Of a stretch of DNA of 64,000 nt, positions 51,401 to 57,400 are shown piece after piece. Source of the DNA: Macrostomum lignano (lineage: Eukaryota). Each line of letters opens with the position of its first letter. Position 1 is the stretch's first letter. Below the pieces are notes generated by a model. That model worked only from the letters and a program-made list of their open reading frames with translations. It ran no database searches and had not been told where the DNA came from. The translations under genes were made by a program, and so were the position numbers. The stretch lies in NCBI GenBank assembly GCA_002269645.1, contig NIVC01001591.1, positions 86,714-150,713 of the forward strand. The letters are read 5' to 3'.

Positions 51401-54400
51401 ATGGGAAATGTAGGGAGATGGGAGATGTAGGGAGATGGGAGATGTAAGGAGATGGATTGGTATATTTAAAGACAGACCCTCTGCATTAGCAAGATCAGTT
51501 TTGTCAGCTCTTCATCTCTCTTACCTTCTTTTATTAGAACATATTCTGCATGGTAACATCTATAGAATTTGGAATTCAATGACTGAGATAGCTTTGTTCA
51601 ATGTCAAACTTTAAGACCACAAACTTTCAGGAAATCTTTGCTCAGCCACATTCGGCAGGCCAGCGTGCTCAACTGCGGTCAGACCTGCCAAAGAATGAAA
51701 GAGTTCTACATGGCTCCCGTGGTTCGATTCGTGTATAACACGGTGAGCTTTACCGCCGAGTTCATGCGTCTAGGGAGCCTAATTTGATGTGTCTGTAGTG
51801 CCTAATTTGATGTGTCTGTAGTGCCTAATTTGATGTGTCTGTAGCGCCTAATTTGATGTGTCTGTAGTGCCTAATTTGATGTTTCTTTCTGTCAGGGATG
51901 TCTAATGTAGTGTGTCAGGGATGCCTAATGTAGTGTGTCAGGGATGCCTAATGTAGTGTGTCAGGGATGCCTAATGTAGTGTGTCAGAGATCCCTAATGT
52001 AGTGTGTCAGGGATCCCTAATGTAGTGTGTCAGTGATGCAATGCGTCAGGAATGTCTAATGTAGTGTGTCAGGGATGCCTAATGTAGTGTGTCAGGGATG
52101 CCTAATGTAGTGTGTCAGGGATCCCTAATGTAGTGTGTCAGGGATCCCTAATGTAGTGTGTCAGTGATGCAATGCGTCAGGAATGTCTAATGTAGTGTGT
52201 CAGGGATGCCTAATGTAGTGTGTCAGGGATCCCTAATTTAGTGTGTCAGGGATGCCTAATGTAGTGTGTCAGGGATCCCTAATGTAGTGTGTCAGTGATG
52301 CAATGCGTCAGGAATGCCTAATGTAGTGTGTCAGGGATCCCTAATGTAGTGTGTCAGGGATGCCTAATGTAGTGTGTCAGGGATGCCTAATGTAGTGTTT
52401 CAGGGATGCCTAATGTAGTGTGTCAGGGATGCCTAATGTAGTGTGTCAGGGATGCCTAATGTAGTGTGTCAGGGATGCCTAATGTAGTGTGTCAGTGATG
52501 CAATGCGTCAGGAATGTCTAATGTAGTGTGTCAGGGATGCCTAATGTAGTGTGTCAGGGATCCCTAATGTAGTGTGTCAGGGATGCCTAATGTAGCGTGT
52601 CAGAGATACAGTGTGTCAGGGATGTCTAATATAGTGTTAGGGATGCCTAATGTAGTGTGTCTGAGATAGAATGTGTCAGGGATGTCTAATATGTCAGGAA
52701 AGCCGAATGTAGCGTGTCATGACATGTCAGGGGTGCCAAAATGTGTCCTAAATAGGCACAGGTATTTTCTTTGGTAGTGGAAGCGAAATGGTATTCATTG
52801 CGATATGATATAAAAAGTACATAGAGCCCTTTATCCAGTATCAATAAATAACATTGAACACCTCCCGTGCACTTAAATTTCAGTTCTCCTATCTAACCTT
52901 CCTATTCATGTTCAGCTATTTGCTTCTGTTCGATTTGAAGCACGATTTCACCGTGATGGAGTATATTGTAATTTCCTGGATTGTCACTTTGCTTTTAGAG
53001 GAGGTTAAGCAGGTAAGCAGGTGCATCACGTGAGGTCTAATGACAATGCTTTCTGAGTCTTTTAATAAAACAATGCCAAACTCAAAGAGTGCAATTGTTG
53101 CTTTGAGTTAAGTAATTTTTTAAAAGCTTTTTGGAATCGAATTGCTCTTGACTGGGTGTGAATCGCAATTGTCAATATTGTGTCTGTTCTCTGACTGCCA
53201 CCTAAGTGAAATTTGAGGATCGAGAAGAGAAGAGACTGCAGAAGGACGGGAGAAAAGTTATGACAGATAGCTGAGAGAAGAGATGAGAGGAGGGTAAAGA
53301 AGGAAAGATGAGAGCGAGAAAGAGGAGAAGGGAGAGAGGCGTGAGAGGGGGGATGAGGGGGAGAGGGGAGATGAGGGGAGAAAGGGGGGAGATGAGAGGA
53401 GAGAGGGGGGAGATGAGGGGAGAGAAGGGAGAGATGAGGGGAGAGAAGGGAGAGATGAGGGGAGACAGGGGGGAGATGAGGGGAGAGAAGGGAGAGATGA
53501 GGGGAGAAAGGGGGGAGATGAGGGGAGAGAAGGGGGAAATGAGGGGAGAGAGGGGAGATCAGTGGAGAGGAGGGGAAAGGAGGGAAGAGGAGGGAGATGA
53601 GAGTAGAGAGAGAAGCTTAGATATTTGTTAATTTTATTTGGCTAATGCTTTGAGTCTGGGAGCGACATAAAAAATCCCAGTGCGTATTTGAACACAGTTG
53701 GCACAACTCAGTATTTGAGTTGGAAAATATTAGAATCCTAACTAACAGAATCCGTCAATACCTGATCCCATTTCACTTGCCTGTCAACAGCTTCATGATT
53801 GAAATCCAGTGACAAACCAAATCTGTGAATGTGAATGCAACTCCTAAAATCGTAACTATAGAAATTTGAGCTTTTAGAAGTTTCGCGGAATTCAATTCCG
53901 TACTTTTTTAACTCGAATATTAAAATCCTTTTTCATCTTTTATATTGGCTAGATTAGCAATCCACAGCTGTTTTTGACTGATGCTAGCTTAGAGCGGCTT
54001 AAACTCGTAGGCAGGCTGTGGTTTCAGCCGTGTGTGTGTCAATTTTGTTGAATAAATAGTACATATAAATCCATGCTTTTTGCTCTGACTAATTATTATT
54101 CGGTAAATAAGCTGCAAGAATTTTCCGGATGGCCTGACGTTTCCTTTCTCGCATTACTAGCATACTTTTTTTTGGTTGAACTTTTAAGAATCTCAATTAT
54201 ACATGTAATAAGCAAGCGCACAGATACCATGATTAAATATAGCCATTAGAAAATTCTTAGCTCCGCCTCTGCAGCTTCTTCAAGTTTTCTACAACAGCTC
54301 TATCCTGTTTGAGGCGACATTTTTCCCTGCGTTGGCGACACACGAGCTCTATGACTGCTATGGCTATTTCAATACATGTAGTTATATCTACAGCGACTTT

Positions 54401-57400
54401 AACTGTAAATTTTTCCAGTCCTTTCTATTTCTGCTTTAAATCTGAGCAGTGAACCAGTTCGAACGTCTATTGTTTTTTATGCAATGCCGTTTTTGTTTAT
54501 TTTAATTGCCATCCCAAATGTACACTCTCTCCCCACCAGTCCCTCTCTATCCCCGCCACCCCAATGTACTCTCTCCTGACCAGTCCCTCTATCCCCCGCC
54601 GCCCCAATGTACACTCTCTATCTACCAGCCCCTCTCTATTCCTGCCACCCAATGTACACTCTCTCCCGACAAGTCCCTCTCTATCCCCGCCACCCCAATG
54701 TACACTCTCTCCTGACCAGTCCCTCTATATTCCGCCGCCCCAATGTACACTCTCTCCTGACCAGTCCCTCTCTATCCTCCGCCGAACCAATGTACACTCT
54801 CTCCCGACCAGTCCCTCTCTATCCTCCGCCGCCCCAATGTACACTCTCTCCCAACCAGTCCGTCTCTAGCCCTCGCCACCCTCATCTGCATTAACCATCG
54901 CAAGCCCAACCCAACCTCTGTGCAGGCCACCCTATCCGGAATCAGTTTCTCAACGTACATCTCAGACAGTTGGAACAAACTCGATTGTACAGCTGTGGGC
55001 TTATTCGTACTTGGCCTCGTACTGAGACTAATATCTTTATTAAGCGAATCGCCCGAAACTGTACTCTTGTCCGGTCACGCCTATGACGTCATCCTCACGG
55101 ACGGATTGTTTGTCGCGGCGAGAATTTGCTACGCCTTCAGTCTGTTCGCTTTCTGCATCCGGCTGATGTACATCTTCAGCTTCCACATTGCCCTGGGACC
55201 GAAACTGATCATGATTGGCAAGATGGTTATTAACGATTTAGTGCCGTTCATGGTGATCTTGCTGGTGTTCATCCTCGGGTACGGGGTGGCGGCCCAGTCT
55301 ATCGCTTATCCAACTGGATTTTACACGCCAAATCAGGATTTTAATAAGACATCGCCTAAGAAGATGACTCACACGGAGATTTTTATACACTTTTTAACTA
55401 GAGCCTATTTTCAAATGTTTGGCGACTTTGGATTGGACTCAATTCAGGCTGAGGGTGAGTGCGCCTGCTGGCTACTTGAGTGAGTGGAGAAGAGATTAGA
55501 CAGGGTGAGATTAGAGAGAAAATGGTGAGATTAGAGTAGGTGAGATTAGAGTAATAGAGAGGGGGAGACAGGAGTAGATGAGATTAGAGTAGGTGAGATT
55601 AGAGAGCGAAAGGGTGCCAATAGAAGGGTGTGATTCGACAATAATGTAGAGAAAGAGGATAATAGTACGTGAGATTTGAGAGCGAGAGGGTGAGATTAGA
55701 GAGTGTGATAAGTACGCTGGTAGTTGAGATGAGAGTGCGAGGTAGCAAATTTAATATCGGCTAAAAATCATAATGAATTCAATTAAATAAAGCAAAAGCA
55801 TTTTGCTATTATTATTGATTTGCAGACAGCGGCTGCCTTGATGAGGGCAAGTGTCCCCACTGGACAGCAAAATGGCTACTGCCGATCATGCTAGGTGTCT
55901 ATGTTCTCTTGACCAACATCCTCATGTTTAACCTGTTGATCGCCATGTTCTCCAGCACCTACGAATCGATCAATCAGTTCTCTGCTCTGCACTGGAATTA
56001 CCAACGGTACAGCATGATCAAGGAGTACATTGAAAGGTCACCGCTAGCTCCACCGCTGATCATTTTCTGGCACGCTTACGAGCTCGTGTTCTTTATCCAG
56101 TTGCGATATCAGGGTCGCAAACTATCGGAACTGGAGGACCCGCTGAGAATCAGTTATAAAGACAATGTTAAGAAGGAGCGCGAACTCGTCAAGTGGGAGC
56201 ACATGAAGGCGATGGACTTTTTGAGACAGGATCAGGAGTGTCATGGAAAGAAGGTGGGTTTTGATTGGCTGGGCGATGGTGAGTGCTTGGGCAGAGAATC
56301 GGAGGATGGGGTGGTGGGTGCTTGGGCAGAGAATCGGAGGATGGGGTTGTGGGTGTTGGGGCAGAGAATCGGAGGATGGGGTGGTGGGTGCTGGGGCAGG
56401 GAATCAGAGGATGGGGTGGTGGGTACTGGGGCAGAGAATCGGAGGATGGGGTGGTGGGTGCTGGGGCAGGGAATCGGAGGATGGGGTGGTGGGTGCTGGG
56501 GCGAGAATCGGAGGGTGGGGTGGTGGGTGCTAGGGCGAGAATCGGAGGGTTGGGTGGTGGGTGCTGGGGCAGGGAATCGGAGGATGGGGTGGTGGGTTCT
56601 GGGGCAGAGAATCAGAGCCTAGTGGTCTAGCGCGGCGCTCTGATGTGCCAGCGGCCCAGGCTCGATTTCAAGTGCAGTCCCATTAATTTGGTGCTAATTT
56701 GGAATCTCGGCTTGGCTCTGCTCGTGCAATTAAAGTCCTTGAGGGCCAACCCCCAAGGCACAGTGAAGTGTGCATGTCTAACGATAAAATAAAGTCAGGA
56801 CCGCTGTACACTCCTGTGTGAGTGTGTGCCTGTGCGTACGACTGCGTACGTATCCGCGCGCTGGTGTACCTGCTCAGGGGAGCCGGCGGAATGGGCAGAA
56901 AATGCCTCTCGCCGGTTGTGTGACAATGTCGCTTAAAGTGCGCCAGGGTGCACACAGCCTCTAACTAAACGGGGTGGCGGTTGCTCGGTCGAGAAATCGG
57001 TGAATGGGGTGGCAGGTGTTAAACCATCTCTACATCTCAGTAAAAAATAACAAAACACAGGGCGGTCGCTCGGACTCAAAGTCTGTCATAGTCAGGACTT
57101 CTGGTCCCCAGCTGGGTGCCGGCGGCCTTCTCCCGGCAGCGGCTGACGTGGCCAAGCAGATGTCGGACGCGACTAGCGGCATCGGGATGGAACTCGAAAA
57201 GAAATTCAAAAGCGTAGACACTCAGCTGACAAAGATTAGCACTGATTTCGATCAGAGATTGACCGACCTGTCAAACACGCTGAATGGATTCAGTGTTGCT
57301 GTGCAGGCGCTTCGGGAAGGCCAGGAGCGGCTGGCCTCGGTGCAGCAGGCGCGAGCAGTGGCCGGGTCGGTAAACACAGCCGAGGCGCAGCAGCAGCAGC

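Follow-up and report, generated by a model that had tools for sequence, protein, structure and literature searches.

The region analyzed, called the window throughout, is a stretch of 64,000 nucleotides (nt) from contig NIVC01001591.1 (positions 86,714 to 150,713 of the forward strand, assembly GCA_002269645.1) of Macrostomum lignano, a free-living macrostomorph flatworm (Platyhelminthes, Macrostomorpha) that serves as a laboratory model. With high confidence, the greater part of a gene for a long TRPM cation channel of the flatworm TRPM_PZQ clade lies in the window, as one of its homeolog copies (Mlig004938g1). TRPM_PZQ is the target of praziquantel (PZQ), the sole drug used against schistosomiasis. 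A splice-aware walk along the window gave 25 GT-AG exons on the + strand, from 32722 to 62084, that reproduce the protein PAA66092.1 at 100% identity. This is BOX15_Mlig004938g1, a model of 1830 amino acids (aa) flagged 'partial' in GenBank. A first-pass annotation made from the letters alone had proposed a flatworm host, and the complete match to PAA66092.1 bears this out. The deposited model stops at 62084, and the protein of a sister copy maps along the window as far as 63998, providing the last two exons. The resulting map, in which MHR denotes the N-terminal TRPM regions, S1 to S6 the transmembrane helices and NUDT9H the NUDT9-homology domain, is as follows.

32722..64000, + strand: TRPM_PZQ-clade gene BOX15_Mlig004938g1, beginning at the annotated start codon and cut off by the window end, ~57 codons short of completion
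32722..32919, + strand: exon 1 as annotated, with the FGEIEF start of MHR1
33310..33484, + strand: exon 2, MHR1/SLOG
34252..34278, + strand: exon 3, a micro-exon of 27 nt encoding RDKSNTQGG
36273..36439, + strand: exon 4
36744..37076, + strand: exon 5
37695..37822, + strand: exon 6
38869..39044, + strand: exon 7
39108..39223, + strand: exon 8, preceded by a 63-nt intron
39532..39681, + strand: exon 9
39780..39833, + strand: exon 10
41872..42031, + strand: exon 11, MHR3/4
43336..43521, + strand: exon 12, Gln-rich linker
43630..43722, + strand: exon 13
44778..44915, + strand: exon 14
46774..46956, + strand: exon 15
48227..48336, + strand: exon 16
49623..50146, + strand: exon 17, TRPM2-like domain / pre-S1
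51631..51742, + strand: exon 18, pre-S1 and start of S1, ending RFVYN-T
52884..53012, + strand: exon 19, remainder of S1, plus S2
54926..55454, + strand: exon 20, S2-S3 linker, S3, S4, S5 and pore
55826..56253, + strand: exon 21, S6 and TRP helix
57061..58011, + strand: exon 22, C-terminal helices, coiled-coil region and acidic/Ala-rich linker
60071..60156, + strand: exon 23, start of the NUDT9-homology region
61004..61295, + strand: exon 24, NUDT9H core
62040..62186, + strand: exon 25, Nudix-box-equivalent region
62875..62901, + strand: exon 26, ALRNSMSDV, from the sister-copy model
63933..64000, + strand: exon 27, from the sister-copy model and cut by the window end

The encoded protein has an N-terminal SLOG/MHR region, six transmembrane helices, an F-G-D selectivity filter, a TRP helix and a C-terminal NUDT9H. 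Pfam identifies the SLOG domain (LSDAT_euk, E 5e-43), the TRPM2 domain (E 2e-52) and Ion_trans. The NUDT9H matches human NUDT9 (1q33) with E 4e-31 and that of Nematostella TRPM2 with E 2e-28. An intact Nudix box of the REFGEE type, the kind present in enzymatically active invertebrate TRPM2 channels, was not found; the sister copy aligns NFISRR to REFGEE, so that the box is degenerate. A word-indexed protein database search returned flatworm fragments only, at ~60% identity (Schistocephalus, Cichlidogyrus, Hymenolepis and Macrostomum). In a HMMER scan of 1.8 billion representatives the top match was at 99%, and the next at 71%, 71% and 59%. Cluster look-up showed that the first three are from M. 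lignano and the fourth from Schistosoma rodhaini, and that the members of the 99% cluster are g1, g2 and g3 of BOX15_Mlig004938. The best solved relatives in the PDB are Nematostella TRPM2, TRPM5 and TRPM4, and sequence search of the PDB found no solved TRPM_PZQ structure.

The drug-binding pocket can be read codon by codon. S1 is RFVYNT|FSYLTF, where the bar marks an intron. The equivalents of N1388 (aac, 51737-9) and T1389 (acg, 51740-2) in the numbering of the Schistosoma mansoni channel (Sm.TRPM_PZQ) are the last two codons of exon 18, followed by the GT donor at 51743. The intron within S1 spans 1141 nt, most of it taken up by ~40 copies of a 23-nt minisatellite, and its acceptor AG ends at 52883. 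S1 then resumes with ttc (F) at 52884, tcc (S) and tat (Y). Exon 19 thus supplies Y at 52890-2 (Y1392) and F at 52899-901 (F1395), together with W at 52977-9 (W1421) and L at 52989-91 (L1425), and the Ca2+-site residues E at 53001-3 and Q at 53010-2. The W-N-K-L-D of S3 at 54971-54985 aligns to W1451-D1455. S4 reads cgg R at 55160-2 (R1514), ctg L, atg M and tac Y at 55169-71 (Y1517), and the following codon, in the position of T1518, is atc I at 55172-4. The pore filter FGD is encoded by ttt-ggc-gac at 55418-26. The TRP helix has aag K, then gag E at 56023-5 in the position of D1677 and tac Y at 56026-8 (Y1678), followed by R at 56035-7 (R1681) and P at 56050-2 (P1686). The exon borders flanking these segments are canonical. 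The first-pass annotation had noted a pocket signature and an FGD filter here, and every codon it listed lies where it was placed, within true GT-AG exons that rebuild PAA66092.1.

The pocket helices align without gaps to the published positions of Sm.TRPM_PZQ. Park et al. named N1388, Y1392 and F1395 in S1, W1421 and L1425 in S2, W1451, N1452, L1454 and D1455 in S3, R1514 and Y1517 in S4, and Y1678, R1681 and P1686 in the TRP helix (10.1101/2021.03.09.434291). Rohr et al. added the variable positions T1518 and D1677 (PMC9910428), and a paper on a flukicide added T1389 (PMC10542552). Fifteen of the 17 positions that were mapped are identical in the window protein and the schistosome channel, namely N1388, T1389, Y1392, F1395, W1421, L1425, W1451, N1452, L1454, D1455, R1514, Y1517, Y1678, R1681 and P1686. 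At the other two positions the window protein has Ile in place of T1518 and Glu in place of D1677. In the scheme of Rohr et al., which takes one letter each from S1, S4-S5 and the TRP helix, the code is therefore 'NIE', with Glu and not Asp as the gatekeeper. 'NIE' is the configuration reported for M. lignano, and 'NTE' that of the monogenean Protopolystoma (PMC9910428). The 'N/T/E' label given in the first-pass annotation has to be replaced, because the T of the literature code is T1518, which is Ile here; the Thr that had been noted is T1389. That residue had also been counted among those that govern PZQ sensitivity, a role that does not agree with the finding that the T1389A substitution is tolerated by PZQ, T1389 being important for the ligand BZQ (PMC10542552).

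The S2 Glu/Gln, the S3 Asn/Asp and the TRP-helix Glu, which bind Ca2+ in the solved structures of TRPM2, TRPM4, TRPM5 and TRPM8, are all present in the alignment of the window protein. TRPM2 is gated by ADP-ribose together with Ca2+.

How specific is this set of residues? We examined the equivalent positions in 50 representative TRPM sequences from outside the flatworms. Asn at 1388 is found in 66%, Tyr at 1392 in 82%, Arg at 1514 in 96%, Glu at 1677 in 92% and Tyr at 1678 in 90%, and N, Y, R, E and Y occur jointly in 23 of the 50. The only positions that discriminate are Y1517, where an S4 Tyr is found in 6% elsewhere and the residue is usually His, and T1389, where an S1 Thr is found in 10%. 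The pocket signature is thus weakly specific, and cannot alone identify a TRPM_PZQ. Since most of its residues are family-wide, orthology with TRPM_PZQ rests on the tree and on overall identity rather than on the motif. In this family Glu before the Tyr of the TRP helix is ancestral and Asp is derived, the latter being found in trematodes and cyclophyllidean cestodes (PMC9910428).

Two neighbor-joining trees were constructed. The first used 64 TRPM representatives over 341 columns with 100 bootstraps; the second was made from the segment between S3 and the TRP helix, which allowed cestode and monogenean fragments (S. solidus and Cichlidogyrus) to be included. The schistosome reference was S. 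rodhaini CAH8536228.1 (1488 aa). All 19 named residues of Sm.TRPM_PZQ, from N1388 through P1686 and including T1518, F1521, W1667 and D1677, are found in it at a constant offset of 766. Because they fit a single offset, this protein is identified as schistosome TRPM_PZQ, judged from its sequence to be an N-terminally truncated model. The window protein, Mlig001812 and A0A1I8HSQ2 form an M. lignano clade with 99-100% bootstrap support, and in the first tree this is sister to schistosome TRPM_PZQ at 94%. In the second tree the TRPM_PZQ clade including the cestode and monogenean fragments is supported at 70%. Long TRPMs of trematodes and cestodes form the clade that branches next (99% in the first tree; 93% for the TRPM_PZQ clade plus this sister in the second). 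All fall in a flatworm-only clade of 14 sequences with 100% bootstrap, apart from the TRPM2-like channels of Lingula, Bulinus, Lymnaea and Octopus, and in the first tree the window protein does not group with TRPM2 orthologs. Between S3 and the TRP helix it is 65% identical to TRPM_PZQ of the schistosome, Schistocephalus and Cichlidogyrus. Identity falls to 48-52% with the sister clade of flatworm paralogs and to 42-46% with the TRPM2-like channels of brachiopod and snails. An alignment and a tree had been proposed as the way to examine the first-pass assignment, and on both the assignment holds: the pocket positions correspond without gaps, and the protein lies inside the TRPM_PZQ clade.

The M. 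lignano channel is nevertheless not 'the' ortholog, as had been supposed. There are at least three paralog groups in this species that are 71-79% identical to one another in the channel core, each apparently present as several near-identical homeolog copies. On the basis of the sequence comparisons, Mlig004938 is a TRPM_PZQ co-ortholog, one of at least three in M. lignano. The groups differ at drug-relevant positions. Mlig004938 has N-T...I...E with an FGD filter. Mlig001812 reads N-S...I...E, its residue 1389 being Ser, and its filter is FGN. In A0A1I8HSQ2 position 1388 is Ser; the PZQ-insensitive Fasciola has Thr there.

Comparison with related channels places the window protein more precisely. 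The closest is the cloned Ml.TRPM_PZQ (PMC9910428), from the same species and clade and with the same 'NIE' code of S1 Asn, S4-S5 Ile and TRP-helix Glu. S. mansoni TRPM_PZQ (Smp_246790, compared via CAH8536228.1) has the same SLOG/MHR region, six transmembrane helices, TRP helix and NUDT9H, and its channel core is 59-65% identical. The FQMFGD filter is common to the window protein and the schistosome, cestode and monogenean orthologs. Of the two differences in the pocket, Ile for T1518 is a change that is harmless in the schistosome background, while Glu for D1677 lowers potency. M. lignano is free-living and has several paralogs, whereas the schistosome is a parasite with one gene. The TRPM2-like NUDT9H channels (Nematostella TRPM2 6co7, human and lophotrochozoan) share the domain order, the E/Q/N/D residues and the Glu-Tyr of the TRP helix, and the solved structures that match most closely are among them (E 4e-41 over the channel core and 2e-28 over NUDT9H). 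However, they are only 42-46% identical and lie outside the flatworm clade, most have His in S4 where the window protein has Tyr, and the M. lignano protein has a degenerate Nudix box, with NFISRR in place of REFGEE.

The cavity of vertebrate TRPM8, which accepts menthol and icilin, has the same S1 Tyr, S4 Arg and TRP-helix Tyr and Arg as the window protein; R1514, Y1678 and R1681 have been equated with R842, Y1005 and R1008 of TRPM8 (PMC10542552). Human TRPM8 responds weakly to (S)-PZQ, a stereo-preference opposite to that of TRPM_PZQ. By the count of Rohr et al. (PMC9910428), TRPM8 differs at 10 of 23 pocket residues. TRPM8 is a much weaker match in sequence (E about 1e-23) and lacks the NUDT9H.

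The sister clade of long TRPMs, represented by S. spindale CAI2730782.1, C. sinensis KAG5451156.1 and T. solium TsM_000429800, is flatworm-specific and shares the S4 sequence R-L-M-Y-I and S1 N/S-T. In both trees it stands closest among the outgroups (99% and 93%). It differs in having Met/Phe or Met/Leu in place of the S2 Trp/Leu, and Phe or Cys for the TRP-helix Tyr, and has just 48-52% identity. CAI2730782.1 (2242 aa) was first taken as TRPM_PZQ on account of its length, and was rejected for its Met/Phe in S2 and Phe in the TRP helix. Nor can its clade be TRPM_MCLZ, whose published numbering (H946, Y1117) points to a far shorter protein in which S4 carries His.

The family-wide nature of most of the signature raises the question of whether this is simply a generic TRPM2-like channel, in which the voltage-sensor-like-domain cavity and Ca2+ site have been preserved and have no specific link to PZQ. 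Beyond the joint occurrence of the five residues in almost half of the non-flatworm set, N, Y and E-Y stand at the equivalent positions in Nematostella TRPM2 and zebrafish TRPM5, and human TRPM2 differs at only 5 of 23 pocket residues (Rohr et al., PMC9910428). We nevertheless consider this very improbable. The grouping with schistosome, cestode and monogenean TRPM_PZQ at 94% and 70%, and the identity of 65% as against 42-46% to the brachiopod and snail channels, speak against it, and the S4 Tyr, S1 Thr and FQMFGD filter are shared with the schistosome channel. Moreover, PZQ does activate a channel of M. lignano that has the same pocket code (PMC9910428).

Some aspects of the data do weigh against assigning the window gene to TRPM_PZQ and to the published pharmacology. 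Both trees were made by neighbor-joining on 236-341 columns, and not by likelihood, and the comparison of the pocket covers 17 of the 23 published positions, compiled from three papers. The published number of the gatekeeper Glu, 1495, exceeds that in the GenBank model of Mlig004938g1 (1296) by 199, and the published clone could be Mlig001812, which is also N...I...E. The gene would then still be in the TRPM_PZQ clade, with the cloned and assayed channel being Mlig001812, and the pharmacology of Mlig004938 could differ. The multiplicity of M. lignano paralog groups with their 71-79% identity allows for this, and 1495 fits no database model. Yet the paper counts two differences in the pocket, to which Mlig001812 would add Ser1389 and FGN, though T1389 may be outside the 23. 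The Glu is residue 1296/1297 in the Mlig004938 models, ~1218/1240 in those of Mlig001812 and 1089 in A0A1I8HSQ2. When Mlig004938 is extended by the 5' exons and ankyrin pieces described below the Glu falls at ~1478-1500, bracketing 1495. We regard Mlig001812 as the less likely source of the clone, while taking this possibility seriously. The remaining adverse observation is in exon 25 (62040-62186). By comparison with the homeologous segment 31722-31871 of the g2 locus it has three 1-nt deletions that shift ~34 codons, corresponding to the Nudix box, after which the frame is restored with no stop introduced. Together with the GenBank model being 'partial' and ending at the first deletion, this might suggest that the g1 copy is a decaying homeolog, on its way to becoming a pseudogene after recent duplication of the genome. 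That is improbable. The 25 exons of the deposited model are intact up to its end, with canonical splice sites and no stops, and the three deletions compensate one another in frame. Two of the three are in short runs of C or G, as expected of long-read assembly errors, and assembly error is the simplest reading. Even if the deletions were real, the whole NUDT9H is dispensable for the PZQ response of the schistosome channel, which was unaffected by its truncation (10.1101/2021.03.09.434291). Membership of the TRPM_PZQ clade thus remains the preferred assignment for Mlig004938g1.

We can then consider how this channel would respond to the drug. From M. lignano, Rohr et al. (PNAS 2023) obtained a TRPM_PZQ clone whose pocket is 'NIE'. 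They reported its stereoselective activation by (R)-PZQ, with a half-maximal effective concentration (EC50) of 18 μM, as compared with 55-280 nM for the channels of flukes and cyclophyllidean tapeworms (PMC9910428). By analogy with this clone of the same code, the first-pass expectation of a channel that is PZQ-responsive at lower potency is probably correct. The Ca2+ assays and E-to-D mutant that had been suggested are already published for the clone, in which E1495D is ~2.5-fold more sensitive (PMC9910428). Replacement of Asp by Glu does therefore lower potency, as had been claimed, but Glu is not a special variant, being the ancestral state throughout the family. The Glu at 56023-5 places the window protein in a low-sensitivity subtype with pseudophyllideans, monogeneans and free-living flatworms, and not in the high-sensitivity subtype of trematodes and cyclophyllidean cestodes, which has Asp there. 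The Glu side chain has been modeled in the literature as intruding into the pocket and so shortening the residency of the drug. With a Glu gatekeeper and an S4-S5 Ile, micromolar drug should be needed, and we infer that Mlig004938g1 would behave like the published clone.

By homology and from general knowledge of TRPM structures the channel would be tetrameric, Ca2+-permeable and non-selective for cations, and PZQ is expected to open it as in the schistosome ortholog. In the proposed pose the core carbonyl of PZQ would be hydrogen bonded to the S1 Asn (N1388) and to the Tyr (Y1678) and Arg (R1681) of the TRP helix. The outer carbonyl would contact the S4 Arg (R1514), the aromatic ring would stack on the S4 Tyr (Y1517), and the cyclohexyl ring would sit among Y1392/F1395 of S1, W1421/L1425 of S2 and P1686 of the TRP helix. 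Every one of these proposed contact residues is present in the window protein. The binding pose, the per-residue roles and the EC50 of 18 μM come from published work; the present analysis established the sequence of Mlig004938g1, its exon structure and species of origin, the domains it encodes, its place in the trees and the correspondence of its residues.

The deposited model of Mlig004938g1 is truncated at the 3' end and probably also at the 5' end. The excess of 199 in the published numbering points to 5' exons that are absent from the model, and candidates for these were found upstream of exon 1.

31943..32010, + strand: probable unannotated upstream coding exon with an 'SW.P...C..F' motif; the acceptor may instead be at 31898 or 31877
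32667..32721, + strand: probable 5' extension of exon 1, with a C-x-C-G...H motif upstream of the annotated Met
28247-28375, 29538-29744 and 30392-30478, + strand: three open reading frame (ORF) pieces with ankyrin repeats (Pfam Ank E 5e-13), phase 0 and GT-AG-compatible, with splice sites read by eye

The motifs S-W-Y-P-...-C-V-Q-F (31943-32010) and V-V-C-A-C-G-G-...-H (32680-32712) are in frame with canonical splice sites. We take SWYP...C-V-Q-F and C-A-C-G...H to be conserved N-terminal motifs of TRPM channels. The exon at 31943-32010 is homologous to residues 45-69 of the Mlig001812 model and the same exon is present at the Mlig001812 locus, and the extension of exon 1 aligns to 'VCPCGQPADTH' of Mlig025325 and to 'RCRCG' in the Mlig001812 model. 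Taken together, this suggests that the GenBank models PAA66092.1 and PAA88821.1 are probably 5'-truncated. With the upstream exons the gatekeeper Glu moves to ~1337-1359, and it is on adding the ankyrin pieces that 1495 is bracketed; the published number matches neither a database model nor the hand-built 5' extension exactly.

The ankyrin pieces could belong to the TRPM gene as N-terminal exons, or could represent another gene that is not annotated. None of the M. lignano protein models in the databases searched contains them, a database search with the putative N-terminal extension returning generic ankyrin proteins only. No ankyrin exons were found within 10 kb upstream of the Mlig001812 locus, where the 'SWYP' exon is the only part conserved. 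If they do belong to the channel, an ankyrin-bearing N-terminus would be unusual for a TRPM. Two distant TRPM paralogs of M. lignano, Mlig003066 and Mlig025325, have ankyrin-like sequence in long N-terminal extensions ahead of MHR1, which is unusual in TRPMs.

Some other features of the window deserve mention. The micro-exon at 34252-34278 interrupts a conserved motif of MHR1, KAAESAG|CWIVTGG. The Mlig001812 model has a similar insert, which the trematode relatives inspected lack. The micro-exon is thus either genuine and specific to Macrostomum or an annotation artifact common to both models. Minisatellites, with repeat units of 21-47 nt in tens of copies, dominate the intron sequence (51777-52692, 53273-53610, 54507-54881 and 56277-56617, and others such as 21500-23300 and 46900-49600). 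Many of these have no stop codon in any of the three frames and look like long ORFs. A dispersed repeat of ~300 nt occurs in at least three copies in the window (56660-56961, 32951-33264 and, inverted, 25899-25999) with 89-93% identity, in introns of the TRPM gene and near the end of the upstream myosin gene. It is probably a short interspersed or miniature transposable element. The upstream gene (12400-25100, + strand) encodes an unconventional myosin with a Myosin_head motor domain (Pfam E 4e-129) and a C-terminal SH3. Its introns too are packed with minisatellites that read as long open frames.

On the question of the drug response the window adds nothing new. The gene is in GenBank, and a channel with the same code has been cloned, assayed and mutated at the residue that had been highlighted; the gene, clade and pharmacology of the M. 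lignano type of TRPM_PZQ were thus already known. What is mildly new is the presence of several co-orthologs with variants, and the incompleteness of the gene model. We tentatively suggest, as a plausible rather than a favored picture, that M. lignano has at least three old co-orthologs carrying drug-site variants such that the micromolar PZQ phenotype could be the sum of several channels, and that the present locus has unannotated 5' exons and possibly ankyrin repeats. If so, the paralog with Ser at 1388 would carry a natural, as yet unstudied change at the very residue on which the insensitivity of Fasciola depends. Natural variants of the pocket help to explain which worms respond to PZQ. 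With several divergent co-orthologs, one of which has Ser at the key site in S1, a single 'Ml.TRPM_PZQ' may miss part of the response of the whole worm.

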